Numbered from the stretch's first letter, positions 5,275 through 40,774 are shown. The stretch: DNA of 64,000 nt from Schmidtea polychroa (GCA_044892525.1 CM097885.1:55986001-56050000), one strand, 5' to 3'. A program made the numbers and translations. The notes: a model not told the origin generated them from the sequence alone.

Positions 5275-8200
5275 TTAATTCATATTCATTTTACAAATAA
5301 ACTTCTGTTTAATGTCACAATTGGTGAATTTTGTCACCAAATCTTTGTCAAATTTGTTTACGAATGGGCATCGGTCCGAGGGGCTATCATTTGATTCAGC
5401 ACTATGAAAGAAATGATGATACAACGAAAATATTGAAAATAATTACCCATAGTATTTCAAAGTTTTCCTTCTCAAAATCATTTGATTATAAGCGAGAGCT
5501 CGTTGAATTTCTACAATGGCATTGGTAATCAAATTAGAACTTAGATTAAGATCGGAGAATTTATTTTGATTCAAAGATCGTCTTTTGCGAGTATGATCTT
5601 CTTCCACTACATTTTTGACCCAAGTCTTTGTTTCTGAATTGTATACATAGCCATTTGTAATTGCTTCATTAATTTTAGTAAACAATTCAACAATCTGACT
5701 GAACCAGTCAACGAATTGGCTGTCGACTTCGCCAAACTCTTCATTTTCAACGAAAACAATCATTTTTTTTACATCTGTTTTGACTTGTTGACGATTGCTC
5801 TCATCTATATACTTTATTAGACTTTCCCAGTTCCATTGTTTCAAAGAGTTGACGTTTTCTTTGATTTTGGTTTTCATTGATTCTGTCAAGACGAACTTTT
5901 CTTCACTTTTTGTCACTTGGGTGGTGATCAATTGCACTATCTTTTGCAGTTCATCAATCCATTTGAAATCTATTTTTTGATATTCTTTAGACTGAACTAA
6001 AGACAAAAGATTTTCTATTCTTGCAATCCATAGATTAACATCGATTCCTTCCACATTTTGAAGAAGTTCTTTCCAGTTGCTTGGTAAATTGATTTGAATC
6101 TTTTCAATGACTTTAACATTTTTAGTGTTATCAGTTTCTGTTAATTTTGTTTTCGTCTCCTTAATGTTTTGAATGATTTCAAAAACCCAGTTGAGAAATT
6201 CGGTGTCGATTTTATCGTATTCTCTATTTTGTACCAGGATTATGAATCTTTTGATTTTCTCTTTTATTTCCGGTTTGTTAACACCTTCAATTTCATCTAT
6301 GATATCAACCCACCTTAACTGATTCAAAATATCGACAAATTTATGAGACTTCTCCATTACTATCTTCAAATTTTCATCAATATTTTCTGTTTCTTTTGTA
6401 ATCTTCCTTACGGTTTCAAGTTGAGTTACAATAGTGCTGATCCACTTTAATAAGTCTTCATCTATGTTATCGTAATCTTTATTTTTGATAAGGAAAATAA
6501 TATATTTGATTTTCATAAGAGTGTCCCGTTTGTGATGATCGACAACATATTTTATTAAGTTCTCCCAGTTCCATTTTTCCAAATATTTAACCCTTTTGAT
6601 GACTTTATGGATGATTCTTTTCCTCTCTTTTGATATAAACTTTCGACGATGTTTTCGGTGAACCTTTTTCCAGTGAAATAAGTTACTAATATGAATTTTT
6701 TTGTGGAAATTGAAATTTTTGTGTGGTCTGAACTTGTTGATTTTACTAATATGTTTTTGGTTGTGAAAATTGAAATTTTTGTGCGGTCTGAACTTGTTGA
6801 TTTTTCGATACCCTTTAGAGGAACATCGTTTTTTTCGAATTTTATTTTCAACTTCAACTGTGTTTTTCGTCCAGGTTCTTGTGTTTGGGTCATAAACATA
6901 TCCATTCTCTATTGCGTAGTTGATTTTTTTGAATTCCTCAAAGATTTGAATGAACCAATCTATTGTATCGGGATCGAGTTTATCCGTTTCTCCGTTCTCA
7001 ATGACATATATTATTTTATTAATATTTGTTTGAATGGGTTCTCGTTTATCTTCATCGATATATTGAAGAAAGTTTTCCCAATTCCAGAGTTTCAAAGAGT
7101 TGATATTTGTTGTTACTGTTTGGATTGAAACCTGATTAAAGTTCGGTCTCGGTCGTCGTGGCTTACCTCCAATATTGATACCAATACTAATGTGAGGAAT
7201 AAGTTTTTTTGCAACACCATGCAATAAATTTAATAAAATACATCTTTTTTTTCTTATATTGTTCTCTACTTCAACAACTGTCTTTACCCATGTTTTTGTC
7301 TTTTCATCATAAACATAGCCATTGGTTGTTGCATAATACATTTTATTAAATACCTCAAACATTTGGTTAAACCAATCCACTGACTCAACATCCAATTTGT
7401 CATATTCTCCACTTTCAATAATTGTTATGACATTGTTTACACTTTTTCGAACTTCTTCTCTCTTATCCCCATCAATGTATTTCAAATACGTTTCCCAATT
7501 CCATTGTTTTAAGGAGTTTACGTTATCTTTCACGGTTTTAATTGTAACTTCATTAACTGTCGGCTTTTCCACAGTTTTTGTCGACTCTTCCGTTATTAAA
7601 TCAACCAAATTTTGGAGTTCGTCTATCCATTCAAAGTCAATTTTATCGAATTCTTTGAGTTCTATCATTGGCAGCAATAATTGAATTCTTTTTATCCAAA
7701 GATCGACATTGATATTCGGTAAATTTATTATCACTTCCATCCAATTGCTCGGTAAATTTACGAGCACTTTTTTGGCGATTTCGATTCGCTTCTGTTTTGT
7801 TGACCCGGTGAGTCGAATATTTGCGTTTTGTAGGGATATTATGATTTGAGAGACCCAGTTTAGGAATTTCCGATTGATTTTGTGATACTTTCCTTTGTTT
7901 ACGTAACTAATAAATTTGTTGATTTTCTTGAAAACCTTTCGCTTGTTAAATCCATCAATCGAGTCGATGAGCTCATTCCATCTCAATTCATTGAGAATTA
8001 CAAGATATTTATGGGACATGTCAATGATGAAATTAAGTTTATCTTTTCTTTTTAAATGGCCAAATCTTCCTAGGATGCTGATTCTCGGTCGATGTTTATG
8101 AAATCTTTTGAAAAGTTTAAATGAACATCGTTTCTTTCGGATTTTATTTTCAACTTCAACTGTGTTTTTCGTCCAAGTTCTTGTGTTTGGGTCATAAACA

Positions 8201-11200
8201 TATCCATTCTCTATTGCGTAGTTGATTTTTTTGAATTCCTCAAAGATTTGAATGAACCAATCTATTGTATCGGGATCGAGTTTATCCGTTTCTCCGTTCT
8301 CAATGACATATATTATTTTATTAATATTTGTTTGAATGGGTTCTCGTTTATCTTCATCGATATATTGAAGAAAGTTTTCCCAATTCCAGAGTTTCAAAAA
8401 GTTAATATTTGTTGTTACTGTTTGGATTGAAACCTGATTAAAGTTCGGTCTCGGTCGTCGTGGCTTACCTCCAATATTGATACCAACACTAATGTGAGGA
8501 ATAAGTTTCTTTGCTGCACCATGTAGCAAATTCAGCAATATGCATCTTCTTTTCCTCCTGGAGTTTCCATTTTGTGTTATATGTTTAACCCAGGTTTTTA
8601 TTTTGCTATCATAAACATATCCATTGTTCATGAATTCCTTTATTTTACTAAAAGTTTCAAAGATATTATAGAACCAATTGACTGTTTGAACTTCAAGTTT
8701 TTCGAAACTTCCGTTTTCTACAATTGAAATAAGGCCTTGAATTTCGCTTTGAATCTGTTGGCGATTATTCTCATCAATATATATTAACAAAGAATTCCAA
8801 TTCCAATTTTTTAACTGATTGACGAAACCTTTCAATTTTTCAATCGAAGCTTCATTTAGGAAAACTTCTTTTTTCATTTTTATCGATTCCTGAGAAATCA
8901 AATTGACAATTCTTTCCAATTCTCCAATCCATTCGAAATCTATTTTCTGATGATTCTTTGACTTCATAATTGTCAACAACTGTTGTATTCGGCTTGTCCA
9001 TAATTGAAAATCGATTCCATCAATTCTCTGCAAAAGTTCCTTCCAATTGCTTGGTAGAGTTAATTGGATATTCTCAGTAATTTTCAGAGTTTTATTTGCG
9101 GTGGTTTTTGATTGGTTGATTCTTTTTAAAATATTAATTATATCTGTTAACCAATTAATGAGATTTTCATCGATTTTATCAAAGTTTTTATTTTGGACGA
9201 AATTAATAAAAGTTTTGATTTTATTTATAACTTCTATTCTGTCGGTTGATTCGATTTGCTGAACTAATTCTTCCCATTTCAATTCAACTAAATAGTTGAA
9301 ATATTTATATGATATTTCAGTTAAAGTTTTTAAATTAGTCTTTTTCACCTTTTCATTGGCTGCGTTTATTTCATGCGCTTTTCGTAGAGTTTTGATTATT
9401 TCTAAGATCCAATTTAATAAATCAACGTCGATATTTTCAAATTGTTTATTTTCTACAAGTTGAATGAAAGTTTTTATTTTATTGATAACATTTTGTCGAT
9501 CCTTTTCGTCGATATATTTCGTTAACTCCTCCCATTTCAATTCGTGTAAAGCTTCAATATATTTTATTGATTTATCTGTAATTGATTTTATATTAGTTTT
9601 GTTTTCATTTGTAATTTTAGTTTCTTTGATTTTCTTAAATGTTAAAATAATTTCTTTAATGGAATTTATTGTTTCTTCATCGATATTTTTGTATTGCTTA
9701 TTTTTAACATTGGAAATAAATATTTTTATTTTATTTGTCACATCTCGTCGATTAGATTCGTGGATATATTTGATTAATTCTTCCCAGTTTAATTGATTTA
9801 AATCTGTAATTAAAGGATTTAATTTTTCAGTGACAACTGCCAAATCGATTGTTGGTTTTTCTCGGTCTGGTTCATCTGGAAGATTGAAGATTTCAAGCAA
9901 CTCAAGGAGCCAAGAATAATCTATTTTGTCAAGTTCGTTAGAATTAATAAGTTCATTTATTGTTTTTATTCTTCCTGTCCATTTTGTTTTATTAATGTTT
10001 CTAGACTCCTCAATAATTTTCATCCAATTTTCACTAAGAATTGGTTTGAGTTTTGTTATAATTTTCTCTTTTATTAAATGAATCTTTTCCTTGGGAATTT
10101 TGTCTATATTGATCTTGCGAAACTTTTTGAAGATGACTCGGATTCGTTTGTAAAGATTTTCATCGATTTCCTTGAATTTGTTTTCTTTTACTAATTTCAA
10201 TACTAATTCGATTTCTTTTTTAACGTTTTCTCTATCTTTTTCATCTATATTTTTGATAAGATCTGGCCAATTCCACTTGATCAATCTATTGACAAATTTT
10301 TTGACATTTCTTGTAATAACTGTAATTGTTATTGGTCCCTTAGTAGTAGGCTTTCTGATAATCTTGATTAATCTGTTGAATTTCTGTAACCATTTCAAAT
10401 CAATTTTATCTGGTTGATTAAGTTTGATCAATTGAATGAGTTTATTAATGCGATTGGTCCATTTGACTTTATCGATTCCTTTTGTTTCATTGATGACTTT
10501 CTGCCAGTTTGTATCGATGATGAATTTAAGTTTGTTCAATAATTTTTCTTTTTGAACTTGGATTTCTATTTTTGGTTTTTTGTTGTCTCTGATCTTTCGA
10601 ATAGTTTTGAAGATGACTCGGATTCGTTTGTAAAGATTCTCATCGATTTCCTTGAATTTGTTTTCTTTTACTAATTTCAATACTAATTCGATTTCTTTTT
10701 TAACGTTTTCTCTATCTTTTTCATCGATATTGTTGATAAGATCTGGCCAATTCCACTTGATCAATCTATTGACAAATTTTTTGACATTTCTTGTAATAAC
10801 TGTAATTGTTATTGGTCCCTTAGTAGTAGGCTTTCTGATAATCTTGATTAATCTGTTGAATTTCTGTAACCATTTCAAATCAATTTTATCTGGTTGATTA
10901 AGTTTGATCAATTGAATGAGTTTATTAATGCGATTGGTCCATTTGACTTTATCGATTCCTTTTGTTTCATTGATGACTTTCTGCCAGTTTGTATCGATGA
11001 TGAATTTAAGTTTGTTCAATAATTTTTCTTTTTGAACTTGGATTTCTATTTTTGGTTTTTTGTTGTCTCTGATCTTTCGAATAGTTTTGAAGATGACTCG
11101 GATTCGTTTGTAAAGATTCTCATCGATTTCCTTGAATTTGTTTTCTTTTACTAATTTCAATACTAATTCGATTTCTTTTTTAACGTTTTCTCTATCTTTT

Positions 11201-14200
11201 TCATCAATATTTTTGATAAGATCTGGCCAATTCCACTTGATCAATCTATTGACAAATTTTTTGACATTTCTTGTAATAACTGTAATTGTTATTGGTCCCT
11301 TAGTAGTAGGCTTTCTGATAATCTTGATTAATCTGTTGAATTTCTGTAACCATTTCAAATCAATTTTATCTGGTTGATTAAGTTTGATCAATTGAATGAG
11401 TTTATTAATGCGATTGGTCCATTTGACTTTATCGATTCCTTTTGTTTCATTGATGACTTTCTGCCAGTTTGTATCGATGATGAATTTAAGTTTGTTCAAT
11501 AATTTTTCTTTTTGAACTTGGATTTCTATTTTTGGTTTTTTGTTGTCTCTGATCTTTCGAATAGTTTTGAAGATGACTCGGATTCGTTTGTAAAGATTCT
11601 CATCGATTTCCTTGAATTTGTTTTCTTTTACTAATTTCAATACTAATTCGATTTCTTTTTTAACGTTTTCTCTATCTTTTTCATCGATATTGTTGATAAG
11701 ATCTGGCCAATTCCACTTGATCAATCTATTGACAAATTTTTTGACATTTCTTGTAATAACTGTAATTGTTATTGGTCCCTTAGTAGTAGGCTTTCTGATA
11801 ATCTTGATTAATCTGTTGAATTTCTGTAACCATTTCAAATCAATTTTATCTGGTTGATTAAGTTTGATCAATTGAATGAGTTTATTAATGCGATTGGTCC
11901 ATTTGACTTTATCGATTCCTTTTGTTTCATTGATGACTTTCTGCCAGTTTGTATCGATGATGAATTTAAGTTTGTTCAATAATTTTTCTTTTTGAACTTG
12001 GATTTCTATTTTTGGTTTTTTATTGTCTTTGATCTTTCGAATAGTTTTGAAGATGACTCGGATTCGTTTGTAAAGATTTTCATCGATTTCCTTGAATTTG
12101 TTTTCTTTTACTAATTTCAATACTAATTCAATTTCTTTTTTAACGTTTTCTCTATCTTTTTCATCAATATTTTTGATAAGATCTGGCCAATTCCATTTGA
12201 TCAATCTATTGACAAATTTTTTAATAAAGCTGAGTTTTGGTTTCATTGGATATGATTTTCTGTGAATTAATTTTAGAATTCGTCTAAATTTCAGTAACCA
12301 ATTGAAATCGATTTTATCTATTTCGTTGTTGTTGATCAATTGAATGAGTTTATTGAAGCGCGTGGTCCACTTGACTTTATCGACTCTCTCTAAACCATTA
12401 ATAATATTCAACCAGTTAGAATCGATAATTAATTTTATCTTTTTCAGTAAAACTTCTTTCCTAACTTTGACATTTCCTTTCGGATATTTGGTTTGTTTGA
12501 ATTTGCGTAAAATTTTAAAAATCACTCTAAACTGTTTTAACCAATCAATATTGATTTCATTGAAACGTTTCTCTTTAATAATTCTTTTCAATAATTCTAT
12601 CTCTTTGGTTATATGGCTCTTTTCCTTTTCATTTAGGTCAACTATTAAATTTCTCCAGTTCCATTTTTTCAAAAGTCGTAAATAAAATTTCAATTTTTTT
12701 ATTTGTCGCTCTTGATGAATATAATTGATTTTTATTTTCCCATTGAATTTTTCAATTATTGGTTTAAATTCCGTCAACCAATTAACATCAATTTCGTTGT
12801 AGCGTTTTAATTTGATTAAATTTATCAATTTATTAAATCTTTCAATCCATTGATTTTTATCGATTCCTTCTAATTCATTAATAATTCTCCTCCAATCTAT
12901 CGATAAAATAAGTTTTAGACGTCGAATTAGGTTTGCTTTGGTTCGAGAGCCATATTTTATATGAATCCTCCATAGTCGTTTTAGCAGCCTCATCACGAAG
13001 TTAACATTTTCTATCAACTCTAGATTGATGCTGTCAAATTCTTGTCTGTCGGTTAAAAGAAACAATTTATTAATAGTTTCTGTGACACGTTCTTTGTACT
13101 TCCCACTGACAAATTTCAAAAGTTCAGTCCATTTCCACTTTTTCAGCCATTCAATGTGAGTTTTCCATTGAAATAGTAAACGTTTTTTGTAACTCTCTTT
13201 TCCGTGGATTTTTAATCGTAATTTATATATTATCTTTTTCCATTCGTTTAGTGAATTCAAATCGAGTTTGTTAAATTGTTTGTTTTTTACGAACCATTTT
13301 ACTTTAGATAATTTATTATTCCACTCTCCTTGCAATTTTGGATCCAAAGTTGATAAAAAGCTTTTAATTTGACCATTGCCTAACTCATCAATCAATTCGG
13401 TCCATTGGTCACTAGTGCGAATAATTTGTTGGTGAATTCGAGATTTTCTTAATATTTCATAAGTGGACTTCCATTTCTTCAACAGGTTAGGATCAAGGTT
13501 TTTATTTCCATTTGTTTTAACAGCTTCAAATATTTTTTTAATGTTTCTTTTAATTGCAACTTGATCTGTGTCTTTTGTGTTTTCTACGAGTTGTTCCCAA
13601 TTCCAATTTTTTACTTGTTCAACAGTTGTGATAATTGTTTCGCTCTCAGGTTCTTCTATCTGGAACATTTATTACTAGATTTGTGAAATTTGGATGCTAT
13701 TTACTTACCACAAATGACCTTCGTTTACGATTGAGAATAATTGTTATTTTGTGAGGTCTAAAATAAAATATATATTTTATCTTGAAGTAATAATCTTATT
13801 AATTTTAAAAATGCTTTATGTGTGCTTTAGAAAAAACATCGTTTATTGCATTGTATGCTATGAAATCTACATTGGAAGTACACTCAGAACCTTGCACCAA
13901 AGAGTTAAAGAACATCTAGATCCTGGTGGAAAATCCTCGATAAACAGACATCTCCAACAATGTTAACCAGCAAAGTAAAGAAAAATATTTCAATCAAAAT
14001 CGTAGCCAATAGAAACATCCAAAAAAATGTCAAATTCGAAGAAGCAATTCTCATTATAAACAGAAAAATCAACACTAAAGAAGAAATCAATGAAATCGAC
14101 AATTTGATCTGTTGTCATTGACCTTGAGAATAACTGATAATATATAAAAAATATAAAAAAAGTAATAGATAAAATAATATAGAAATTTTAAGAAATATGC

Positions 14201-15335
14201 TTTCAAAAGATATGAATTAAAAATCAAAATTGACACATTAAAATATTTAAATCGCCTATAATATACACCGTATTTTTATAAATATTTTAAAATATTTTAT
14301 TAAAGTAGGTTTCTAGGAGCTAATTATAGAAGCTTTAAAAATTTAAAAATTTTAGTTGGTGTCATTTTGAATTTTAAATGATATTTATCTTAATTTTAAA
14401 TAAAATTTTTAAAAATTCAGAAAAAGAAAATATATCATTATATTATATTTATAACCAATGAGAAGTAAGAAAAAGAAAATAAAAGAAATATAGAAATGTA
14501 TATTCGCGAAAAAGATTGCTAAATTCCAGGTGATTGGCCAGGACGATCTTATAGTCGGAAATTTTTTCATTAAATACATTATTCGCAACAAAAGGCTTTA
14601 TTATTGTTTTAAATAATAAATGCTGCTACCAAGNNNNNNNNNNNNNNNNNNNNNNNNNNNNNNNNNNNNNNNNNNNNNNNNNNNNNNNNNNNNNNNNNNN
14701 NNNNNNNNNNNNNNNNNNNNNNNNNNNNNNNNNNNNNNNNNNNNNNNNNNNNNNNNNNNNNNNNNNNNNNNNNNNNNNNNNNNNNNNNNNNNNNNNNNNN
14801 NNNNNNNNNNNNNNNNNNNNNNNNNNNNNNNNNNNNNNNNNNNNNNNNNNNNNNNNNNNNNNNNNNNNNNNNNNNNNNNNNNNNNNNNNAATTAAAATCA
14901 ACTTACTTTTGAATAGCTGATCTTTCAGGTTCGACAACCCAATATCTTTTTGTTTCCATGTTACTAATAAATGGATTTAATATATTCTTAAATAAATTAT
15001 AATTTAACAATAATCATATATTCTTACTTTGTTTGTTTCATTAAATTTTAAAAGATTTTCATGGGTCTTTGCCAAACACATTTCCTTCGCTGTCTGCCAA
15101 CTAGTTTTGAATTTTGAAACAAAATAACAAGCTCTCTGTGGAATGCAAATTGTTTCTAAATATTTAACATGATTTAAATAAATATAAATAGTAAAAGTTT
15201 ATATTTTTTACCGAAAGCATTATATGGATTATCAGCACCTATAGTGGACCCTGTATTATAAATTTAAAAAAATATTGTATAATTTAAAAAATATTTACAA
15301 GTCACTAAAAATAGCAAAATTATCTTTTTTAACAT
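5275..15335 (-). CDS. Gene A: secreted giant preproprotein (about 2890 aa): signal peptide, N-half CTLD, RKRR, helical repeat modules with internal furin sites, RKRR, C-half CTLD
   Basis: Exons (minus): 15335-15299, 15250-15212, 15155-15028, 14986-14907, 13757-13709, 13659-5447, 5401-5275. All introns are GT-AG, phases are consistent and the total is 8673 nt (2891 codons with stop). N-terminus MLKKIILLFLVTWSTIGA-DNPYNAFETICIPQRACYFVSKFKTSWQTAKEMC...KRYWV. C-terminus RCPFVNKFDKDLVTKFTNCDIKQKFICKMNMN*. AATAAA overlaps the stop. The intron 13758-14906 contains an N-gap, so an extra exon there cannot be excluded. Confidence 0.85.
6821..8552 (-). repeat. Internal duplication in gene A: about 430-bp copies at 6821-7250 and 8123-8552 (offset 1302 bp)
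   Basis: Near-identical segment encoding RCILLNLLHG.AKKLIPHIS...NGYVYDPNTRTWTKNTVEVENKIRKKRCS occurs twice. Confidence 0.9.
10125..12225 (-). repeat. Coding tandem array in gene A: 480-bp (160-aa) unit, about 4.4 copies
   Basis: Exact 480-bp spacing of landmarks (antisense ORFs at 10172, 10652, 11132, 11612). The unit begins KKFVNRLIKWNWPDL. Confidence 0.97.
13830..14633 (+). mobile_element. Penelope-like element 3' fragment (GIY-YIG endonuclease end plus tail) inside an intron of gene A, antisense to the gene
   Basis: IVYCIVCYEIYIGSTLRTLHQRVKEH matches the PLE GIY-YIG motif. The downstream tail resembles 22.85-23.63 kb (shared TTGACCTTGAGAATA, AACCAATGAGAAGTAAG, AATGCTG(C/A)TACCAAG). Runs into the gap at 14634. 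Confidence 0.8.
14634..14889. other. Assembly gap (further gaps at 41344-41486, 54084-54249, 55330-55641)
   Basis: Runs of N. Confidence 1.
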
Positions 15336-15539
15336 TTTTAATAATTATTTGATATTTTTCACTTATTTATATTAGCTTACACACGTGTTACAGTTAAAAT
15401 TATACATTGTATTTTGTAACATAATTATTTATTTAATATTTTGTGTAAACTAAAGAAATTGTTGGTATTAACATATATATTATTAATTTTTAACATTTAT
15501 TTCATAAAGGACTTTTATCGTGTTTTTTAAAAACCTCAT

Positions 15540-25639: not shown

Positions 25640-26100
25640 ATGAGTGCAAAACGCAAAAGCTATAGTGTCAAATATAAAAAGTTGAATTGTGGAGAATTCC
25701 AGTATCAAGAATCTTAAAAGCTTTACAATGTTGGATCTTTAAATGATACGAAAATGGTGAATAGAATATAGTTACTTGAGTCAAAAATAGACCAGGAAAA
25801 TGTTTTGAAAATTCAATTGTAGATTAAGTGGGCAATAATCATTTCCTGAATTAGGAAATATCACCTATATTAGATCACTAAAAAATTCATAGCTTTGTTT
25901 GTATACAAGGCTAATTCAAGCATTTGACTTTACAATGGTATCATAATTATATATACTTCCAGAGGAATTCGAATCATGACAATACTAACTAGATGTCTTC
26001 CTTCAGTGAAATGAACTTTTTATAAGAAGATCGACAACACTTTTGAAGCTATTAAACGCGCACTGGTATTCAAGTTAATTATGTAAAATAAGTTGACGTA
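25640..26100 (+). mobile_element. Possible pogo/Tigger transposase remnant
   Basis: Begins MSAKRKSYSVKYK, resembling pogo N-terminal DNA-binding domains, with an IRRST-like motif near 26025; heavily decayed and no TIR established. Confidence 0.35.
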
Positions 26101-27231
26101 AACCCTCAAGTTATTTACATAGACCTTTTCAAATGCCAACTCTCCAACATGATCACCATGGATAAATTGCGATATTTATGATCCAAGAGAATTAAACTAT
26201 GATTTACCATAGTTGAGTCTCGTCAATTTACAATCAGGGAAGAATTCGATTTTTGATGAGTTATTAAAATGTTGCAGAAGAAAATGATAGGAATGTGTTA
26301 AAATAAATGTTTTGTGATACCTGAAAAACAAGGCATTCTTTATAAAGGCTGGATGCGTATTTTGAACTAAAAATTGAATTTAAATGAGATCTTATTTTCA
26401 GGGACACACGTTTTATATGAGGAAGCGATGCGCAAAAATTTAATAAAATTTGACAAATTAATGGTGCAATAATTACGAGTAATATATAAGATTTAGAAAT
26501 ACAATAAAATATTTTAACCTTTTCAATTAAGTTCTTTGTTAGCAATTATTGATAAGATATTCTAAAATTAATAAACGACCACATTTAACTGGTTTCATCA
26601 TTATGAACTTTCATTAAAATACCATGCAAATCTAACATTTAGTGATTGCCACCCAAATCACATTAGTTAAAGGTCTGCAAATGCAAGGACGGAAAGGGTT
26701 AAAATATATTATAATAATCTAGTAAGAAAACAGAAAACTTAAGTTATTTTCGATTTTTAATTTTGAAAAATCCCGTATTTATAGACTGCAAAAGTATAAA
26801 TTTGATGTCATTTTTAATAACAGATTTTGTGTCTATTAAAAGATTGGAAAATCATAAATATAATTCATTGGATTGTTTTGTGTTATAACTGCTATTTAAT
26901 ATCGTAAATTATTCCACCATAAAATATTTAAAGAATATGAAAATTTGAAAATATTGAAATAATTTATATCTATTATACTTTAAATTCAAACATTAATTTT
27001 CTCAACATTAATTTTAGTTATGTTAAAGTGGAAAAAACTACAACTTTAATTTTCAAGTAAATTTTTAATATTTTATTAATGCTTTTAATTTTAATATTTT
27101 TTGTGGTCTAAGAATTTTTAATTTATTCGATTGGTAATCTGATGTTATTTGTAATTTGAATATAATAAATTTTCGAATTAAAATGAAAATAATAAAATTT
27201 CATATAATAATATAGTTTCAAAGATGTTTTA

Positions 27232-30200
27232 TTAATTCAATTGTCTTTTGCATATAAATCTTTGTTTCATTTCACAATTTGTCAATTTTGTTGTTAGCTT
27301 GTTATTAACCTTTCCAATAAATGGGCACAAGTGAGATTGATTATCATTTTTATCGGTTTTACTGTAAAATAGTTAATTAAAAATAGTTAATAATAAATGT
27401 TGCTTACATGACAGATTCTTGATTGTTATTACCCAAAATCATCATGTTGTACATTAATGCTTTTTTGAGAGCTTCAATCGACTGGTTCAGTAATTCGACA
27501 TTCATTTTTGCTTGAGATTCGTCTGGATAATTTAATCCAGCTGATCTTCTCATTCTCGATCTGGCATGAACTACAATGTTTTTCACCCATGTTCTTTTTG
27601 CTGAATCATAAACATAACCGTTTTTAATCGCGTCATTAATTTTTGTAAATATTTGGAAAATTTGTTCAAACCAATTAACGAGTTGAATTTCTAGTTTTTC
27701 AAATTGCCCACTTTCAACAATTGATATAATTTCCTTAACATCTTTTTCAACTTGTTGGCGGTTATTTTCATCAATATATGCTAAATAGGATTCCCACTTC
27801 CATTCATGTAATTGTTTGACATTACTTTTTAATTTATCGAGTGAACCTTTATTGAGAATAACTTCTTTCTTTAATTTGATTTCTTCTTCAGATATTAAGC
27901 TAATAATTTTTTGCAATTCTTCAATCCAATCAAAATTAATTTTTTGATATTCCTTGGATTCCATCATAGACAAAAGCATTTTAATACGCCCAATCCATAA
28001 ATTATGATCCACTCCTTTAATGCGTCTAACAAGTTCTATCCAATTTCCAGGCAACTTGATCTGTATTTTCTTAATGATGTCTTTTCTACTTGATGTGAAT
28101 TTCGTTACCCTTATCTGTTGTAATGTCGTGATTATTTGACCGATATAGTTAACTAGATCTATCTCAATGTTTTCATACTTTTTGTTTTCTACATTATAAA
28201 TGAACTCGTTGATCTTTTTAATGACTTCTGGTCGACTGTTTTCATCAATATATTGCATCAATTCTAACCATTTTAGTTCATTCAACATGACTATGTATTT
28301 ATCTGAAGTTTTGATAATAACGTCAAGATTTTGTTTTTTAATTTCCTCATTCTTAATGTGAATGATTCTTACTTGTTTTAATGTGCTTAAAATTTGGGCG
28401 ATAAAATTTATTAAATCAGCATCGATTTTTTCATATTCTTTATTTTTAACATAGACAATGAACATTTTTATTTTGTTGACAACTTCCGGTCGATTGCTTT
28501 CATCAATGTATTTCATTAATACTTCCCATTCCAATTCGTTTAATACGTTAATATAACTGTTTGATGTTTCGGTTATTATTTTCAAATTTTCTTCTGTTAC
28601 TTTTGCGTTTTTATTATGAACATGTCTAACCTTTCTCAATGTATCTATAATTGTAGTTAGCCAGTTGATTAGATCCACATCTATCTTTTCATATTGGTTA
28701 CTTTGAACAAATGTGATAAATGTCTTTATTTTCTTGATCACTTCGGGCCGACTGCTTTCATCTATGTATTTCACTAATTCTTCCCAGTTTAATTCTATCA
28801 AGAAATTAATGTATTTGTTTGATGTTTCAGTTATTGTTTTCAAATTTTCTTCTGTTACTTTCGCGTTTTTATTATGAACCTCTCTAACCTTTCTCAATGT
28901 ATTTATAATTGTAGTTAGCCAGTTGATTAGATCTATATCTATCTTTTCATATTGCTTACTCTGAATTAGTGTGATAAAAGTTTTGATTTTGTTGATCACT
29001 TCTGGTCTATTACTTTCATCTATGTATTTAACCAGTTCTTCCCACTTCAATTCATTTAGAATGACAATATACTTATTTGACGTATCAGTGATTGTTTTAC
29101 GATTTTCTTCTTTTGTTTTTTCATTGGTTATATGAACTTCTTTAACTTGTCTCAATGTAGTTAAGATTTTCGTTAGCCAGTTGATTAGATCCACATCTAT
29201 CTTTTCATATTGCTTATTTTGAACAAATGTGATAAATGTCTTTATTTTCTTGATCACTTCAGAACGATTGGTTTCATCTATATATTTCATTAGTTCTTCC
29301 CAATTTAATTCTATCAAGAAATTGATGTATTTGTTTGATGTTTCAGTTATTGTTTTCAAATTTTCTTCTGTTACTTTCGCGTTTTTATTATGAACCTCTC
29401 TAACCTTTCTCAATGTATTTATAATTGTAGTTAGCCAGTTGATTAGATCTACATCTATCTTTTCATATTGCTTACTCTGAATTAGTGTGATAAAAGTTTT
29501 GATTTTGTTGATCACTTCTGGTCTATTACTTTCATCTATGTATTTAACCAGTTCTTCCCACTTCAATTCATTTAGAATGACAATATACTTATTTGACGTA
29601 TCAGTGATTGTTTTACGATTTTCTTCTTTTGTTTTTTCATTGGTTATATGAACTTCTTTAACTTGTCTCAATGTAGTTAAGATTTTCGTTAGCCAGTTGA
29701 TTAGATCCACATCTATCTTTTCATATTGCTTATTTTGAACAAATGTGATAAATGTCTTTATTTTCTTGATCACTTCAGAACGATTGGTTTCATCTATATA
29801 TTTCATTAGTTCTTCCCAATTTAATTCTATCAAGAAATTGATGTATTTGTTTGATGTTTCAGTTATTGTTTTCAAATTTTCTTCTGTTACTTTCGCGTTT
29901 TTATTATGAACCTCTCTAACTTTTCTCAATGTATTTATAATTGTAGTTAGCCAGTTGATTAGATCCACATCTATCTTTTCATATTGCTTATTTTGAACAA
30001 GTGTGATAAATGTCTTTATTTTCTTGATCACTTCAGAACGATTGGTTTCATCTATGTATTTCACTAATTCTTCCCAGTTTAATTCTATCAAGAAATTAAT
30101 GTATTTGTTTGATGTTTCAGTTATTGTTTTCAAATTTTCTTCTGTAACTTTTCCGTTTTTAATATGAACTTCTCTAATTTTTCTCAATGTAGGTATAATT

Positions 30201-33200
30201 TCGGTTAACCAGTTGATTAGATCTACATCTATCTTTTCATATTGTTTGTTTTGAACGTATGTAATAAAGGTTTTTATTTTTTTTGTAAATTCTGGCCTAT
30301 TCTTTTCATCAATGTAGTTAATCAATTCCTCCCATTTTAAATCAATTAAGTAATTTACGTATTTATTTGATGTTTCTGTTATTATTTTTTTATTTTGAGT
30401 CGTCACTTCCTCATTTTTAATGTGAATGTTTTTAACATCTTTTAATGTTGTGATGATTCGAGTAATCCAATTTATTAAATCTGTGTCGATTTGTTCGAAT
30501 TGCTTATTTTGAACAAATTTGATAAATGTTTTAATTTTGTCAAATACTTCCGGTCTGCTTTTATCATCAATGTATTGCATAAGTTCTTCCCATTTCAATT
30601 CATTTAGTATCTGGATATATTGAATTGAAAGTTCAGTAATTACTTTAAGAATTTGTTGTTTATTATTTGCGTTTGTGATATTAATTTCTCTGATTCTTCT
30701 TAGCATGACAATTATCTGATTTACCCAGTTGAGTAATGTTGAATCAATTTCCTCGTACTTTTTGTTTTGAGCTAATATTATGAAGTTTTTTATTTTTTTA
30801 TTGATGTCAGGCTTGCTCTGTTCATCGATGTATTTCATGAGTTCTTCCCATTTTTCTTCATTCAAAATTTCCAAATAATTATCTGTCAATTTAATGATTC
30901 TTTCTTTGTAACTTAAATTTGCTTTTTCATTTTGAATTTTTATTTTAACTTCTCTTAATGTATTTATGATTTCAACAATCAAGTTAAGTAATTCAGAATC
31001 AATTTTCTCATATTGTTTGTTTTGAACAAGTGTGATAAAGGTCTTTATTTTCTTTGTCATTTCCGGTCTTTTGGTTTCTTCGATCTGTTTTACTAGTTCT
31101 TCCCAATTTAGTTCTATTAAGAAATTGACGTATTTAATAGATGTATCTGTTATTAATTTTCGATTATCGTTTGTAATTTTTTCATTTTTTACGTGAACCT
31201 CCTTGATTTGTCGCAAAATTATAATAATATGATTAATCCATTTTATCAAATCAGTGTCGATTTTTTCGTATTGCTTATTTTTAACAAAGGTTATGAAGGT
31301 ATTTATTTTATTTATCACCTCCGGCCTGTTACTTTGATCAATATACTTCACCAATTCTTCCCATTTAATCTCTACGAGCACATTAATGAATTTATTTGAT
31401 GTTTCAGTTATTTCTTTTAAATTTGCTTCTTCTGTTTTTGTGTTTTTGATTTGTACTTCTTTAACTTTCTTCAATGTGTTAATTATTTCAGTGATCCAGG
31501 TAATTAAATCTATATCAATTTTTTCAAATTGCTTATTTTCGACAAGAGTAATAAATGTTTTTATTTTATTTAATACTTCTAGTCTGTTGTCGATATTTTT
31601 AAGCAATTCTTCCCATTTCAATTCATTTAGAGTAATAAGCAAGTTATTCGACTTATCGGTTACTGTTTTAATGTCAACAATATTTTCTTCTGTAATTGGT
31701 ATTTCTTTCACTTTAAAGATTTTTTCTAATTCCTTTAACCAAATCAAATCAATTTTTTCTATTTCGTTTAACTTAACAAGTTTGATAATTGTATTAATTC
31801 TTTCTGTCCATTTCGCTTTATCAATATTTTTCGTTTCGTTAATTATTTTCAGCCAATTGGTATTGATAATTGGTTTCAATTTTTCTAAAGAATTTTCTTT
31901 TTGAATTTGTATCTCAAATTTAGGCAACTTATCCTTTATAACTTTTCTTATTGTTTTATAAATAACACGAATTTTTTTATATAAATTTTCATCTATTTTG
32001 TTAAATTTATTTTCTTTCACTAATTTTAAAACTATATCTATTTCTTTTTTAACGTTTTCTCTATCTTTTTCATCGATATTTTTGATAAGATCTGGCCAAT
32101 TCCACTTGATCAATCTATTGACAAATTTTTTGACATTTCTTGTAATAACTGTAATTGTTATTGGTCGCCTAGTAGTAGGTTTTCTGATAATCTTGATTAA
32201 TCTGTTGAATTTCTGTAACCATTTCAAATCAATTTTATCTGGTTGATTAAGTTTGATCAATTGAATGAGTTTATTAATGCGATTGGTCCATTTGACTTTA
32301 TCGATTCCTTTTGTTTCATTGATGACTTTCTGCCAGTTTGTATCGATGATGAGTTTAAGTTTGTTCAATAATTTTTCTTTTTGAACTTGGATTTCTATTT
32401 TTGGTTTTTTATTGTCTTTGATCTTTCGAATAGTTTTGAAGATGACTCGGATTCGTTTGTAAAGATTTTCATCGATTTCCTTGAATTTGTTTTCTTTTAC
32501 TAATTTCAATACTAATTCAATTTCTTTTTTAACGTTTTCTCTATCTTTTTCATCAATATTTTTGATAAGATCTGGCCAATTCCACTTGATCAATCTATTG
32601 ACAAATTTTTTGACATTTCTTGTAATAACTGTAATTGTTATTGGTCCCTTAGTAGTAGGCTTTCTGATAATCTTGATTAATCTGTTGAATTTCTGTAACC
32701 ATTTCAAATCAATTTTATCTGGTTGATTAAGTTTGATCAATTGAATGAGTTTATTAATGCGATTGGTCCATTTGACTTTATCGATTCCTTTTGTTTCATT
32801 GATGACTTTCTGCCAGTTTGTATCGATGATGAATTTAAGTTTGTTCAATAATTTTTCTTTTTGAACTTGGATTTCTATTTTTGGTTTTTTATTGTCTTTG
32901 ATCTTTCGAATAGTTTTGAAGATGACTCGGATTCGTTTGTAAAGATTTTCATCGATTTCCTTGAATTTGTTTTCTTTTACTAATTTCAATACTAATTCAA
33001 TTTCTTTTTTAACGTTTTCTCTATCTTTTTCATCAATATTTTTGATAAGATCTGGCCAATTCCACTTGATCAATCTATTGACAAATTTTTTGACATTTCT
33101 TGTAATAACTGTAATTGTTATTGGTCGCCTAGTAGTAGGTTTTCTGATAATCTTGATTAATCTGTTGAATTTCTGTAACCATTTCAAATCAATTTTATCT

Positions 33201-36200
33201 GGTTGATTAAGTTTGATCAATTGAATGAGTTTATTAATGCGATTGGTCCATTTGACTTTATCGATTCCTTTTGTTTCATTGATGACTTTCTGCCAGTTTG
33301 TATCGATGATGAATTTAAGTTTGTTCAATAATTTTTCTTTTTGAACTTGGATTTCTATTTTTGGTTTTTTATTGTCTTTGATCTTTCGAATAGTTTTGAA
33401 GATGACTCGGATTCGTTTGTAAAGATTTTCATCGATTTCCTTGAATTTGTTTTCTTTTACTAATTTCAATACTAATTCAATTTCTTTTTTAACGTTTTCT
33501 CTATCTTTTTCATCAATATTTTTGATAAGATCTGGCCAATTCCACTTGATCAATCTATTGACAAATTTTTTGACATTTCTTGTAATAACTGTAATTGTTA
33601 TTGGTCCCTTAGTAGTAGGCTTTCTGATAATCTTGATTAATCTGTTGAATTTCTGTAACCATTTCAAATCAATTTTATCTGGTTGATTAAGTTTGATCAA
33701 TTGAATGAGTTTATTAATGCGATTGGTCCATTTGACTTTATCGATTCCTTTTGTTTCATTGATGACTTTCTGCCAGTTTGTATCGATGATGAATTTAAGT
33801 TTGTTCAATAATTTTTCTTTTTGAACTTGGATTTCTATTTTTGGTTTTTTATTGTCTTTGATCTTTCGAATAGTTTTGAAGATGACTCGGATTCGTTTGT
33901 AAAGATTTTCATCGATTTCCTTGAATTTGTTTTCTATTACTAATTTCAATACTAATTCAATTTCTTTTTTAACGTTTTCTCTATCTTTTTCATCAATATT
34001 TTTGATAAGATCTGGCCAATTCCACTTGATCAATCTATTGACAAATTTTTTGACATTTCTTGTAATAACTGTAATTGTTATTGGTCGCCTAGTAGTAGGT
34101 TTTCTGATAATCTTGATTAATCTGTTGAATTTCTGTAACCATTTCAAATCAATTTTATCTGGTTGATTAAGTTTGATCAATTGAATGAGTTTATTAATGC
34201 GATTGGTCCATTTGACTTTATCGATTCCTTTTGTTTCATTGATGACTTTCTGCCAGTTTGTATCGATGATGAGTTTAAGTTTGTTCAATAATTTTTCTTT
34301 TTGAACTTGGATTTCTATTTTTGGTTTTTTATTGTCTTTGATCTTTCGAATAGTTTTGAAGATGACTCGGATTCTTTTATAAAGATTTTCATCGATTTCC
34401 TTGAATTTGTTTTCTTTTACTAATTTCAATACTAATTCAATTTCTTTTTTAACGTTTTCTCTATCTTTTTCATCAATATTTTTGATAAGATCTGGCCAAT
34501 TCCACTTGATCAATCTATTGACAAATTTTTTGACATTTCTTGTAATAACTGTAATTGTTATTGGTCGCCTAGTAGTAGGTTTTCTGATAATCTTGATTAA
34601 TCTGTTGAATTTCTGTAACCATTTCAAATCAATTTTATCTGGTTGATTAAGTTTGATCAATTGAATGAGTTTATTAATGCGATTGGTCCATTTGACTTTA
34701 TCGATTCCTTTTGTTTCATTGATGACTTTCTGCCAGTTTGTATCGATGATGAGTTTAAGTTTGTTCAATAATTTTTCTTTTTGAACTTGGATTTCTATTT
34801 TTGGTTTTTTATTGTCTTTGATCTTTCGAATAGTTTTGAAGATGACTCGGATTCGTTTGTAAAGATTTTCATCGATTTCCTTGAATTTGTTTTCTTTTAC
34901 TAATTTCAATACTAATTCAATTTCTTTTTTAACGTTTTCTCTATCTTTTTCATCAATATTTTTGATCAGATCTGGCCAATTCCACTTGATCAATCTATTG
35001 ACAAATTTTTTGACATTTCTTGTAATAACTGTAATTGTTATTGGTCCCTTAGTAGTAGGCTTTCTGATAATCTTGATTAATCTGTTGAATTTCTGTAACC
35101 ATTTCAAATCAATTTTATCTGGTTGATTAAGTTTGATCAATTGAATGAGTTTATTAATGCGATTGGTCCATTTGACTTTATCGATTCCTTTTGTTTCATT
35201 GATGACTTTCTGCCAGTTTGTATCGATGATGAATTTAAGTTTGTTCAATAATTTTTCTTTTTGAACTTGGATTTCTATTTTTGGTTTTTTATTGTCTTTG
35301 ATCTTTCGAATAGTTTTGAAGATGACTCGGATTCGTTTGTAAAGATTTTCATCGATTTCCTTGAATTTGTTTTCTTTTACTAATTTCAATACTAATTCAA
35401 TTTCTTTTTTAACGTTTTCTCTATCTTTTTCATCAATATTTTTGATAAGATCTGGCCAATTCCACTTGATCAATCTATTGACAAATTTTTTGACATTTCT
35501 TGTAATAACTGTAATTGTTATTGGTCGCCTAGTAGTAGGTTTTCTGATAATCTTGATTAATCTGTTGAATTTCTGTAACCATTTCAAATCAATTTTATCT
35601 GGTTGATTAAGTTTGATCAATTGAATGAGTTTATTAATGCGATTGGTCCATTTGACTTTATCGATTCCTTTTGTTTCATTGATGACTTTCTGCCAGTTTG
35701 TATCGATGATGAATTTAAGTTTGTTCAATAATTTTTCTTTTTGAACTTGGATTTCTATTTTTGGTTTTTTATTGTCTTTGATCTTTCGAATAGTTTTGAA
35801 GATGACTCGGATTCGTTTGTAAAGATTTTCATCGATTTCCTTGAATTTGTTTTCTTTTACTAATTTCAATACTAATTCAATTTCTTTTTTAACGTTTTCT
35901 CTATCTTTTTCATCAATATTTTTGATAAGATCTGGCCAATTCCACTTGATCAATCTATTGACAAATTTTTTGACATTTCTTGTAATAACTGTAATTGTTA
36001 TTGGTCCCTTAGTAGTAGGCTTTCTGATAATCTTGATTAATCTGTTGAATTTCTGTAACCATTTCAAATCAATTTTATCTGGTTGATTAAGTTTGATCAA
36101 TTGAATGAGTTTATTAATGCGATTGGTCCATTTGACTTTATCGATTCCTTTTGTTTCATTGATGACTTTCTGCCAGTTTGTATCGATGATGAATTTAAGT

Positions 36201-39200
36201 TTGTTCAATAATTTTTCTTTTTGAACTTGGATTTCTATTTTTGGTTTTTTATTGTCTTTGATCTTTCGAATAGTTTTGAAGATGACTCGGATTCGTTTGT
36301 AAAGATTTTCATCGATTTCCTTGAATTTGTTTTCTTTTACTAATTTCAATACTAATTCAATTTCTTTTTTAACGTTTTCTCTATCTTTTTCATCAATATT
36401 TTTGATAAGATCTGGCCAATTCCACTTGATCAATCTATTGACAAATTTTTTGACATTTCTTGTAATAACTGTAATTGTTATTGGTCGCCTAGTAGTAGGT
36501 TTTCTGATAATCTTGATTAATCTGTTGAATTTCTGTAACCATTTCAAATCAATTTTATCTGGTTGATTAAGTTTGATCAATTGAATGAGTTTATTAATGC
36601 GATTGGTCCATTTGACTTTATCGATTCCTTTTGTTTCATTGATGACTTTCTGCCAGTTTGTATCGATGATGAGTTTAAGTTTGTTCAATAATTTTTCTTT
36701 TTGAACTTGGATTTCTATTTTTGGTTTTTTATTGTCTTTGATCTTTCGAATAGTTTTGAAGATGACTCGGATTCTTTTATAAAGATTTTCATCGATTTCC
36801 TTGAATTTGTTTTCTTTTACTAATTTCAATACTAATTCAATTTCTTTTTTAACGTTTTCTCTATCTTTTTCATCAATATTTTTGATAAGATCTGGCCAAT
36901 TCCACTTGATCAATCTATTGACAAATTTTTTGACATTTCTTGTAATAACTGTAATTGTTATTGGTCGCCTAGTAGTAGGTTTTCTGATAATCTTGATTAA
37001 TCTGTTGAATTTCTGTAACCATTTCAAATCAATTTTATCTGGTTGATTAAGTTTGATCAATTGAATGAGTTTATTAATGCGATTGGTCCATTTGACTTTA
37101 TCGATTCCTTTTGTTTCATTGATGACTTTCTGCCAGTTTGTATCGATGATGAGTTTAAGTTTGTTCAATAATTTTTCTTTTTGAACTTGGATTTCTATTT
37201 TTGGTTTTTTATTGTCTTTGATCTTTCGAATAGTTTTGAAGATGACTCGGATTCGTTTGTAAAGATTTTCATCGATTTCCTTGAATTTGTTTTCTTTTAC
37301 TAATTTCAATACTAATTCAATTTCTTTTTTAACGTTTTCTCTATCTTTTTCATCAATATTTTTGATCAGATCTGGCCAATTCCACTTGATCAATCTATTG
37401 ACAAATTTTTTGACATTTCTTGTAATAACTGTAATTGTTATTGGTCGCCTAGTAGTAGGTTTTCTGATAATCTTGATTAATCTGTTGAATTTCTGTAACC
37501 ATTTCAAATCAATTTTATCTGGTTGATTAAGTTTGATCAATTGAATGAGTTTATTAATGCGATTGGTCCATTTGACTTTATCGATTCCTTTTGTTTCATT
37601 GATGACTTTCTGCCAGTTTGTATCGATGATGAGTTTAAGTTTGTTCAATAATTTTTCTTTTTGAACTTGGATTTCTATTTTTGGTTTTTTATTGTCTTTG
37701 ATCTTTCGAATAGTTTTGAAGATGACTCGGATTCGTTTGTAAAGATTTTCATCGATTTCCTTGAATTTGTTTTCTTTTACTAATTTCAATACTAATTCAA
37801 TTTCTTTTTTAACGTTTTCTCTATCTTTTTCATCAATATTTTTGATAAGATCTGGCCAATTCCACTTGATCAATCGGTTGACAAATTTTTTGACATTTCT
37901 TGTGATTATATTTATTGTTAGCGGTCTTTTTTTTTCGTTTCTGTATTTTATTTTCCTCAGAAATCTCACAATGAATCGCAGCCTTTGAATGAAATTATTA
38001 TCAATTTCCTTGTATCGTTTTTGATCTACAACTCCAATCATTTTTTCTATTGCGATGATCAAATTATTTCTTTCTTTTTGATCTACGAAATTCATTAGTT
38101 CAGGCCAATTCCATTTTTTTAATAGTTTTACATATCTTCCAATCAAAATAATTCTTCTTTCTGATATTATTGGTTTTATTTTTGTCACTTCTCTTATTTT
38201 CGTTATGATCGGTTTAAGTTCTAATAAGAATGTTGAATCTATTTCGTTGTAACGCTTGGCTTTTATTAATTCTATTACTTGTTTAAATCGAGGAATCCAT
38301 TTATCTTTTTCTACTCCTAATTTTTCCAGAATCTTAATCCAATCAATAGTTAATATCAATTTTATTTCACGTATAATTTCCGCTTTTTCTCTTCCCCCAT
38401 ATACTATATGAATTTTCCACAATCTCTTTAATATTCTTATTGCAAAGTTCACATTGTCTATTAATTCTAAATTAATTTTTTCGTGTTCATTATTTTTCAC
38501 TATTATTATCAATTCATTTAGAGCTTTGATTACTCTTTCTTTGTATTTTTCACTAACATATTGCAATAAATCTGTCCATTTGAATTTCAGTAACCAATCG
38601 ACATGATTTTTCCAGCTTACTAAAATCTTTTGTTTGTAGTTATGTTTACCGTGCATTTTTAGCCTTAATTTATAAATAATTTGTTTCCATTTTAACAGCA
38701 ATTTTGGATCTAGTCTATTAAATTGTTTGTTTTTAATTAAAAGCATAACTTTGTTCAATTTGTTTTTCCATAATATTCTTAATTTTGGATCAAGTTGATT
38801 TATATATCGTTTCATTTGTTCTTTTCCGAATTCATCAGTTAATATATTCCATCTCTCAAATGTATGAATGAATTTTCGATGAGTTCTTGTTCTACTTAAT
38901 ACTTTATATGTTCTTTTCCATTGTTTAACTGTACCTTCATTTAATTTACTGCCACCATCACTTATTTGTTTGAATACTTTTTCAATAGTTTGTCTCATTT
39001 CAGGTCTGTTTTCATTGGTAGATTTATCTATTAAATTCTGCCAATTCCAGTTTTTTACTTGTCGTACTGTTGTTACAAGTGAATGTCTATTCGGACGATG
39101 AATCTAGAGAAATAATTCAATTTTCAATTTATTTTTAGTTACAAATACCATAAATGATCTTCGTTTTCTGTTTAATATAATTGTTATTTTTCGTGGTTGC

Positions 39201-40774
39201 CTAAAATTAAGTTTAAAATTAATTTAGAATTTGAAAAGAAAAAGAAATGCACTTTTTATGCACTTGATGTTATTCGTGATTTTATTTATTTTAGTAATTT
39301 CATTTCAATATTTTAATTATCATTTTCCTTTATTTTCATTTTATAACACTTAGAATTATTGTTAAATAAATAAAATAACTGATCTATAGTCTGAAATGAG
39401 GATAAAGAAAATTGATTATAAGATAAATAAGTTAATAGACAATTGATGAAAATGATAAAGGATTTTACCGGTAGTTTTTCATTTTCCGTTTTTTGAATTG
39501 TCTCAGTTAAATGTAGTTGTTGAAAATTTTTTATTTTTTTTATTAGTTGACAGTATATCAATATTTTTTAGAAAAATAACAGAAACATTTAACACTAAAA
39601 ATACTGTTTTCGAAAATTCGCAGTTTTTTAAATATTTAAATATATAACAAATATTTATCATAACAGAACACTTTCATACTATTAGAATAAAAATTTTAAT
39701 TTAAAATATTTACATTATTTGTACTTTTTTTTATTTTCAAAGCTTTTTTATGAATTATCTCGAATAATTTTTAAATTTAGTTTTTTGTGCTTTGGTTTAT
39801 TAAAAATAATTTTTAAAGCATTAATTTTTATTATTTACCCTATTAACTAATAACGTAATCTCAGATTAGTTTTATACGAAATAAGTAGATTTTCATTCAC
39901 ATTAATGATCCATAAAGGCATATTATTAATAAACTAGTTGTGCTCAACAGTTTTATTATAAATTACATGTTATAACATGTTTATAAGAACAATTATTTTT
40001 ATAGTTCGTTTTGAATTCAATGATTAAAATTTATTTGTGTTTCCTGGGCCCTATTGGATATGTAAAAGTTATTTGATTTTCATATTTTACTATTACATAA
40101 ACTTCTCAACATTTGGAGTCCAATTATAATAATTTTGATATTTTTGGTTGGAGTATTATATTATTTCCATTGCTTAAATTCAATTTTTTTTAGTCTTATA
40201 TTTTTATTTTAAATTTGCTATTGGAAAGCGAAGTTAGAACTTATTAAAATATTTAATAATAATTATTTATGGGTTACTCATTTATAAATATAAAATAAAA
40301 AGGTTATTTTCTATCACTTTCTAAATTGGTTAATTTCTTAAAAATTTTAATCGATTTCAGAATATTTTTTCATTTAAATTGTCACTTACTCTTTCACAAC
40401 ATCATTTTTGTTTTCTAGAACCCAATATCTTTTTGACAATAAATTGTCAGCTAATGGATTAAGGATTGCATTGTCCGATGAATTGAATGGAATAGAATGT
40501 TGTCGAATCTTTTCTTGACACATTTCTTGAGCGTTTTCCCAACTTGTTTTGAATTTGGATACATAATAACATGCTTGGCCAGGAATACAAATTGTTTCTA
40601 AAATTTTATCATTTGTTATGTTATTTTATTTCACTATTCAAAAAATACCGAATCCATCGTTTGAATTATCAGCCTGTATATTTGTACCTGAAATCAAATA
40701 TTATTACACAAATCCATTATCAATTATTATTTCTTACATAGCGCCAATAAGGACAGAAATGCTATTTTAAACAT
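27232..40774 (-). CDS. Gene B: paralog of gene A, secreted giant preproprotein (about 4053 aa) with split CTLD halves around a repeat insert
   Basis: Exons (minus): 40774-40738, 40687-40649, 40597-40390, 39200-39149, 39103-27408, 27361-27232. GT-AG introns, consistent phases, 12162 nt (4054 codons with stop). N-terminus MFKIAFLSLLALCTNIQA-DNSNDGFETICIPGQACYYVSKFKTSWENAQEMC...KRYWV...KITIILNRKRRSF. C-terminus RMRRSAG...HLCPFIGKVNNKLTTKLTNCEMKQRFICKRQLN*. AATAAA overlaps the stop. Confidence 0.87.
28700..30200 (-). repeat. 258-bp (86-aa) module array in gene B with a 516-bp near-exact duplication
   Basis: LNWEELMKYIDETNRSEVIKKIKTFITFVQNKQYEKID occurs twice; GAACAAATGT at 29221 and 29737. Confidence 0.9.
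32040..37905 (-). repeat. Coding tandem array in gene B: 480-bp (160-aa) unit, about 12.3 copies
   Basis: Landmarks every 480 bp from 32481 to 37761; units differ at only a few sites (TTRRP/TTKGP, LKLII/LKFII). Confidence 0.98.

Follow-up and report, generated by a model that had tools for sequence, protein, structure and literature searches.

Can the two ends of a giant secreted protein be the two halves of a single small domain? The question is raised by a 64,000-nucleotide stretch of DNA from the planarian Schmidtea polychroa (GCA_044892525.1, CM097885.1:55986001-56050000), which we refer to as the window and in which positions are counted from the first letter. The window is AT-rich (GC 0.20-0.35), has introns of ~45-55 nt, and carries on its minus strand two giant open frames, at 5443-13668 (gene A) and 27404-38998 (gene B). 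Exons were assembled around these frames from the flanking DNA and its translation in three frames, which yielded uninterrupted minus-strand frames of 2,890 aa for gene A and, from six exons, 4,053 aa for gene B. Both encoded proteins start with a signal peptide and the N-terminal half of a C-type lectin-like domain (CTLD), followed in both by the sequence KITIILNRKRR↓SF (here and below the arrow marks a predicted cut), ~80-aa modules, a beta-hairpin, an R-x-R/K-R site, and a terminal exon with three cysteines. The insert that separates the CTLD halves is 2,700-3,900 residues long. Sequence comparisons support the interpretation that a single CTLD, lacking its long loop, is divided between the two ends of the protein.

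Similarity of the two ends to C-type lectin domains

The N-terminal half is encoded in gene B by exon 3 (40597-40390, minus strand, 208 nt) and in gene A by two pieces of the same summed length (15155-15028 and 14986-14907, minus strand; 128 + 80 = 208 nt). Its elements are strand 1 (CYY/F), helix 1 (SW..A..C, which holds the first canonical cysteine, C1), helix 2 and a WIGL-type strand; the corresponding motifs in gene B are C-x5-C-YY, SW..A.EMC and KRYWV. When the 68 aa of gene B exon 3 were compared with the PDB by phmmer, 33 of the 36 matches were CTLDs, aligned at their residues ~13-70, and the best PDB matches of the CTLD comparison were snaclecs, CD69 and Ly49. Against 1.84 billion representatives, a full HMMER run with the N-half returned 16 matches at E<=1e-3 (best 3.4e-10), and nine of the ten library matches that were scanned are proteins with multiple Lectin_C domains. 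By ESM Atlas features 87 of its 100 neighbours are Lectin_C, and the hhalign probability is 97%. The N-halves of the two genes are 57% identical and have an N-x-S/T sequon at the same place in the helix-2 region (FNSS in gene B, 40450-40470; FNET in gene A, 15040-15050), which would be compatible with a lumenal or secreted domain. These comparisons identify the N-half as an N-terminal segment of a CTLD, significantly related to Lectin_C proteins.

We built a CTLD profile of 127 positions from 67 full CTLDs, cut from representative proteins that had been selected by the N-half. On this profile the N-halves align at positions 5-59 (B, 31 bits) and 6-59 (A, 28 bits), scores that are circular given how the member proteins were picked. 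The terminal exons (B, 27361-27232, 130 nt; A, 5401-5275, 127 nt; both minus strand) played no part in choosing the profile members and therefore provide an independent test. They align at positions 89/93-124, with 12.2 bits for gene B (93-124) and 9.8 bits for gene A. For both genes, none of 3000 composition shuffles reached these scores; with the cysteines fixed, 12 of 3000 (B) and 18 of 3000 (A) did so, or ~0.5%. No 42-aa window of the inserts scored above 2.7 bits on the same profile. In the PDB the terminal exon of gene B matches the snaclec 7qaj_C at residues 96-129. Lectin_C also makes up 91 of the 100 ESM Atlas neighbours of the gene A terminal exon and 90 of the 100 neighbours of the C fragment of P0001 (UniParc UPI00060D9370), a 311-aa protein that is 90% identical to the gene B C-terminus and is the only relative found among 5.8 billion proteins. 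The terminal exons of genes A and B are 49% identical, and each encodes CPF-x14-C-x7-C-K. Support is modest for reading the terminal exon as the C-terminal segment of a CTLD, comprising strands 3-5 with C2, C3 and C4 at their canonical spacing.

Joined to each other, the two halves give a single domain alignment on the profile at positions 5-124 (38.9 and 30.8 bits) and an hhalign probability of 97% over 113 columns. In the hhalign correspondences CPF holds the strand-3 cysteine, TNC the cysteine past strand 4, and FICK takes the place of FICE. An earlier note on this DNA had claimed that the ends are halves of one CTLD, and the separate placement of the N-half (positions 5-59) and the terminal exon (89/93-124) now lends that claim support at the sequence level. 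The comparison with Lectin_C and related profiles that the note had put forward as a check had a mixed outcome: hhalign recognised the joined halves, whereas Pfam on each half gave no match. Profile positions ~60-90 have no counterpart and are the long-loop region, including EPN/QPD and WND. WND is replaced by LTN/FTN, and every sugar- or Ca2+-binding motif is absent from the domain, which is therefore lectin-like and not a lectin.

Cysteines, selection and basic sites

In the CTLD fold, a disulphide between C1 and C4 bridges the two halves of the domain, and C2 pairs with C3. Each half encoded in the window has three cysteines (gene B residues 29, 35 and 52, and 4023, 4040 and 4048), whereas the 3,850-residue insert of gene B has none and that of gene A has only four, all of them in internal cassettes. 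An odd number of cysteines in each half is what a C1-C4 bridge between the halves requires. Moreover, once the local canonical pairs are formed, the cysteines left over are C1 and C4, which are the canonical bridging partners.

Between genes A and B the synonymous sites are saturated (proportion of differences, pS, 0.68-0.83), whereas nonsynonymous sites differ at a proportion (pN) of 0.27 for the N-half and 0.28 for the terminal exon. Low pN at saturated pS indicates that both halves have been held by selection since an old duplication. Exon 4 of both genes encodes the same 13-residue stretch, KITIILNRKRRSF, although its codons differ at several synonymous positions.

The earlier note had also described the insert as bounded by furin-type motifs, and R-X-K/R-R is indeed conserved at both borders in genes A and B. 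In gene B, R-x-[KR]-R occurs only twice in 4,053 aa, and both occurrences border the lectin-like halves, the first 25 residues past the WIGL-type strand (RKRR, 39169-39158) and the second 58 residues before the strand-3 cysteine (RMRR↓SA, 27556-27545). Both are kept in gene A (RKRR, 13729-13718; RKRR↓SL, 5589-5578), and the second is also present in P0001 (RMKR↓SA). Gene A has four additional R-x-[KR]-R motifs, each after an extra copy of the hairpin. In AlphaFold2 (AF2) models the second site falls in a stretch with a per-residue confidence (pLDDT) <50, after a predicted hairpin, and is presumably exposed. Furin-type convertases are known across Metazoa. The presence of PCSK2 has been reported in planarians (bioRxiv 10.1101/802215). 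Signal peptides, judged by inspection, have in both genes a Met-basic start, a hydrophobic core of 9-10 residues and I-x-A↓DN.

Proposed processing of the precursor

We propose, with a probability of about one half, that each gene encodes one secreted precursor whose ends form a compact CTLD-like domain locked by C1-C4, and from which convertase cuts release the modules and leave a two-chain remnant. After the signal peptide would come the N-terminal part of a compact CTLD that does not bind sugar, with one local cysteine pair and an unpaired C1. The long-loop region would be replaced by 30-47 helical modules, strongly cationic over the first ~60%, and the last three CTLD strands, with C2, C3 and C4, would be encoded at the extreme C-terminus. 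With the whole chain in the endoplasmic reticulum, the two ends would dock as one CTLD-like domain and be locked by the C1-C4 disulphide. A furin-type convertase would then cut at RKRR↓S and at R-x-R/K-R↓S, and the cuts would free the module polymer as a secreted payload (in gene A also several sub-fragments); the remaining product would be a disulphide-linked, lectin-like remnant of two chains. Docking, the disulphide, cleavage and the role of the product are what we infer from the layout, and a role as polycationic secretory or adhesive material is a guess.

Several points weigh against this proposal. The N-half would have to wait unfolded while ~4,000 residues are made. Pfam Lectin_C matches neither half alone, even at E<=10, and the N-half score on our own profile is circular. 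For the terminal exon the support is modest, at 10-12 bits, and hhalign gives it alone 70% over 14 columns; a PDB search with a profile of three terminal exons returned no CTLD, and the AF2 model of the C fragment alone has pLDDT <50. P0001 is possibly a gene model rather than a cDNA, and a search for fragments that span the N-terminal junction (exons 1-4 to the giant exon) found none. Furin-type cleavage at both borders, finally, is deduced from motifs only.

Some of these points suit a different history, which we consider unlikely, although it deserves to be weighed. An old CTLD gene may have received a repeat cassette in a phase-2 intron, which left the halves as relics, so that the ends are now a separate pro-region and a C-terminal cysteine module, with the spare cysteines used for intermolecular multimerisation (compare the ends of mucins and VWF). 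The odd cysteine count of each end is equally compatible with intermolecular bonding, and a 33-residue helix that precedes the terminal exon is no CTLD element; that Pfam recognises neither half and that AF2 yields no folded model of the C fragment would likewise fit relic ends. However, the CTLD-specific residues and cysteine spacing have been kept in both halves over a period in which synonymous sites became saturated, and the cysteines left spare correspond exactly to the canonical pair of C1 and C4.

Helical modules of the insert

An iterated profile detects 30 modules in gene A and 47 in gene B, ~82 aa apart, which fill the insert from ~13 residues past the first basic site to the hairpin before the second. 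Each ~80-aa module is predicted by AF2 to be a small four-helix bundle (block-mean pLDDT mostly 64-92), and NGYV..TWVK is predicted to form a beta-hairpin. The Pro/Lys-rich linkers have pLDDT <50 and the predicted template modelling score (pTM) is 0.31, which suggests that the modules may be arranged as beads on a string. The first ~60% of the insert has a net charge of about +24 per 160 aa, and the remainder is neutral. An electrostatic fold-back, in which a cationic half would pair with an anionic half, is ruled out since the remainder is neutral and not acidic.

Much of the insert length is recent tandem expansion. A 480-nt unit (160 aa, two modules) is repeated with 98% identity 12.3 times in gene B (31985-37903) and 4.4 times in gene A (10110-12222), and gene B has a further array of a 258-nt unit, repeated 7.4 times, at 28467-30388. 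Gene A carries four internal cassettes at ~6795-8625 (residues 1790-2400), each with the NGYVYD..TW.K hairpin, R(K/R)KR↓C and a short cationic stretch, the stretch being of two alternating kinds. Between genes A and B the 480-nt arrays are 96-98.5% identical, while other parts of the genes are saturated at synonymous sites. This likeness points to concerted evolution or to a recent exchange of sequence between genes A and B, unless the arrays were mixed up in assembly.

Searches for relatives of the modules returned little. Pfam, run on 400-aa samples from each end of the gene B giant exon, gave sub-threshold noise and no family at the cutoff. Fold searches with the module model found generic helical bundles only (Foldseek against the PDB and AFDB clusters, E >0.1; VIA wide, Z <=6.5; Atlas, TM <=0.26). 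These results flag the ~80-aa helical module as a candidate new family that appears to have no recognisable relatives.

Two further readings concern how such a long chain of modules might be held by its ends. In the first, which is speculative and which we rate below the relic history, the split domain serves as a molecular clasp. Its halves would dock within a chain, closing a ring of ~4,000 residues, or between chains, building a head-to-tail polymer, and in this way would govern packing in the secretory granule until the border cuts open the clasp on maturation. If true, such a clasp would be an assembly and release principle that has not been described for any secreted protein. The second, more doubtful again, is complementation in trans, with docking between the N-half and the C-half of different molecules. 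Giant cationic rods would then be linked head to tail into chains or rings, which convertase cleavage would mature or dismantle. With ~4,000 residues between the halves, pairing in trans is topologically no less plausible than pairing in cis; snaclecs, which provide the best PDB matches for the N-half and the C-half alike, are CTLD dimers held by disulphides, and the modules look like beads on flexible linkers. However, there is no direct evidence for docking in trans, and cutting at both borders would undo the polymer.

Gene structure and its conservation

All introns of genes A and B are GT..AG, and their phases are identical between the genes. On the minus strand, exon 1 of gene B (40774-40738, 37 nt) comprises the ATG, the hydrophobic signal-peptide core MFKIAFLSLLAL and a GTAAGA donor in phase 1, with the size and phase of the signal-peptide exon 1 of gene A (15335-15299, 37 nt, minus strand). 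Exon 2 of gene B (40687-40649, minus strand, 39 nt, with AG/GT borders) encodes the end of the signal peptide and aligns to gene A exon 2 (15250-15212, minus strand, 39 nt). Exon 3 of gene B is followed by an ungapped intron of 1,189 nt (intron 3, 40389-39201, minus strand) and by exon 4 (39200-39149, minus strand, 52 nt), which encodes KITIILNRKRR↓SF and has a 49-nt counterpart in gene A at 13757-13709 (minus strand). The giant exon of gene B (39103-27408, minus strand, 11,696 nt) encodes the 47 modules, the NGYVYD..TWVK hairpin and the second basic site; that of gene A (13659-5447, minus strand, 8,213 nt) encodes the 30 modules, the four additional internal cassettes and the second basic site. 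AATAAA overlaps the stop codon in both genes.

The motifs and coordinates given for both genes in the earlier note were all correct on rereading. Its statement that exon sizes and phases are kept between the paralogs also holds, with the refinement that the 208 nt of gene A are divided by an additional 41-nt GT-AG intron (15027-14987), found in gene A only, which splits the counterpart of the single gene B exon. If this intron were left unspliced, the N-half of gene A would be frameshifted. The coding conservation of the giant frame extends upstream of its first ATG in gene B as far as the AG acceptor, and the N-terminal junctions rest on this conservation together with the conserved exon sizes, phases and splice sites.

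An assembly gap in gene A (14634-14889) begins 17 nt past the donor of exon 14986-14907 and is therefore intronic; since the flanking exons splice in frame, continuity of the frame through the gap is not needed. A hidden exon that completes the CTLD locally, between exons 3 and 4, was considered as a candidate and is ruled out for gene B. The earlier note had named in advance transcripts with an extra exon in 39201-40389 as one finding that would overturn its reading, and a scan of this ungapped intron with the CTLD profile found no such exon, with no stop-free piece above 2.7 bits. Comparison of the same intron with its gene A counterpart revealed no conserved island.

The junction between the giant and the terminal exon of gene B (27408/27361), which the earlier note had placed here, is borne out by P0001. 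Its sequence is contiguous from the last modules to FICKRQLN, a span that includes RMKR↓SA and the junction. In the window a 46-nt intron that contains an in-frame stop separates the two exons, and P0001 must therefore represent a spliced product of a close relative or of a further paralog; by sequence it would be either a sister-species orthologue or a third paralog. A search of the 5.8 billion proteins found no relative of giant length. Neither P0001 nor the giant open reading frame (ORF) of gene B was on record in exact look-ups among contigs, and a metagenome contig scan with P0001 gave no match.

Exon 4 and the giant exon together make up a symmetric phase-2/phase-2 unit of 11,748 nt in gene B and 8,262 nt in gene A, both divisible by 3, which resembles the trace that an intronic insertion of a cassette would leave. 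Skipping this unit would fuse the CTLD halves in frame. The unit may accordingly be an optional cassette whose omission yields a compact CTLD protein of ~137 aa, an arrangement that would be compatible with the two-chain precursor but to which we give only a slim chance. The symmetry of the unit and the scoring of the joined N-half and terminal exon as one CTLD are in its favour. However, divisibility by 3 has a one-in-three prior and was inherited by both paralogs, the giant exon is under strong purifying selection (A versus B, dN/dS about 0.12), and in P0001 the giant and terminal exons are joined. That a small CTLD gene merely hosts an unrelated giant gene in its intron, with a coincidental continuity created by the gene model, would accord with the fact that no transcript evidence was found for the junctions of exon 3, exon 4 and the giant exon, but it is very improbable in view of a giant frame that is conserved upstream of its first ATG to the AG acceptor and has no signal peptide of its own, a strictly conserved, in-frame exon 4, the joining of giant and terminal exons in P0001, and the same arrangement and phases in both old paralogs.

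Outside the two genes, the plus strand of the window at 46496-56812 differs in composition and contains a 1,330-aa ORF (47654-51646) and further ORFs.

Comparison with known systems

The encoded ends share with the canonical CTLD (PF00059) the CYY/F strand, SW..A..C helix and WIGL-type strand of the N-half, and the canonical C2-C4 spacing and FICK end of the C-half. They differ from it in that the domain is discontinuous, the long loop is replaced by 2,700-3,900 residues, and neither half reaches the Pfam threshold. Compact CTLDs without a long loop are found in the Link module, intimin/invasin and endostatin, all of which are contiguous domains. Compared by layout only, the joined halves would resemble these as a compact core without long loop or carbohydrate site. 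Precursors of the insulin/relaxin type have disulphide-linked end segments and a middle piece bounded by basic convertase sites. Unlike in these precursors, with which there is no homology, the middle piece here runs to thousands of residues and is probably not a by-product but the product itself, and the retained part is lectin-like. A domain formed end to end also recalls the heads of SMC and Rad50 proteins. These are intracellular ATPases with an antiparallel coiled coil, are neither secreted nor cleaved, and are not related to genes A and B.

Among flatworm proteins, the giant secreted adhesion proteins Mlig-ap1 and Mlig-ap2 have long Lys/Arg-rich or repeated regions, and Mlig-ap1 includes a C-type lectin domain (PMC6410801). 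Compared by layout, Mlig-ap1 differs in that its lectin domain is contiguous and lies mid-protein, together with vWD, TIL and EGF domains, and its description includes neither a split domain nor flanking furin sites (PMC6410801). In the 400-aa end samples of the gene B giant exon, Pfam found no vWD, TIL, EGF or TSP1. The literature on planarian rhabdites and marginal adhesive glands yielded nothing that identifies the gene. The earlier note had regarded the layout as one without a described counterpart, and our full-text literature search for split, discontinuous or interrupted CTLDs agrees with this, as it found no such paper.

Implications

Discontinuous domains are common, and their inserts usually consist of one or two further domains. 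Here, an extracellular fold of ~125 residues is interrupted by up to 3,900 residues, and each seam coincides exactly with a convertase motif. Should the halves not dock, the locus would still be a clear case of a lectin gene with a repeat cassette captured by one of its introns. If they do dock, it would provide a natural test case for a secreted chain that keeps an N-terminal half-domain unfolded for minutes, and would be the first lectin-fold two-chain product made around an excised giant middle piece. For planarian gland biology, these genes offer a candidate: a huge, cationic and modular protein, free of cysteine in the insert of gene B, that may carry its own built-in processing system.

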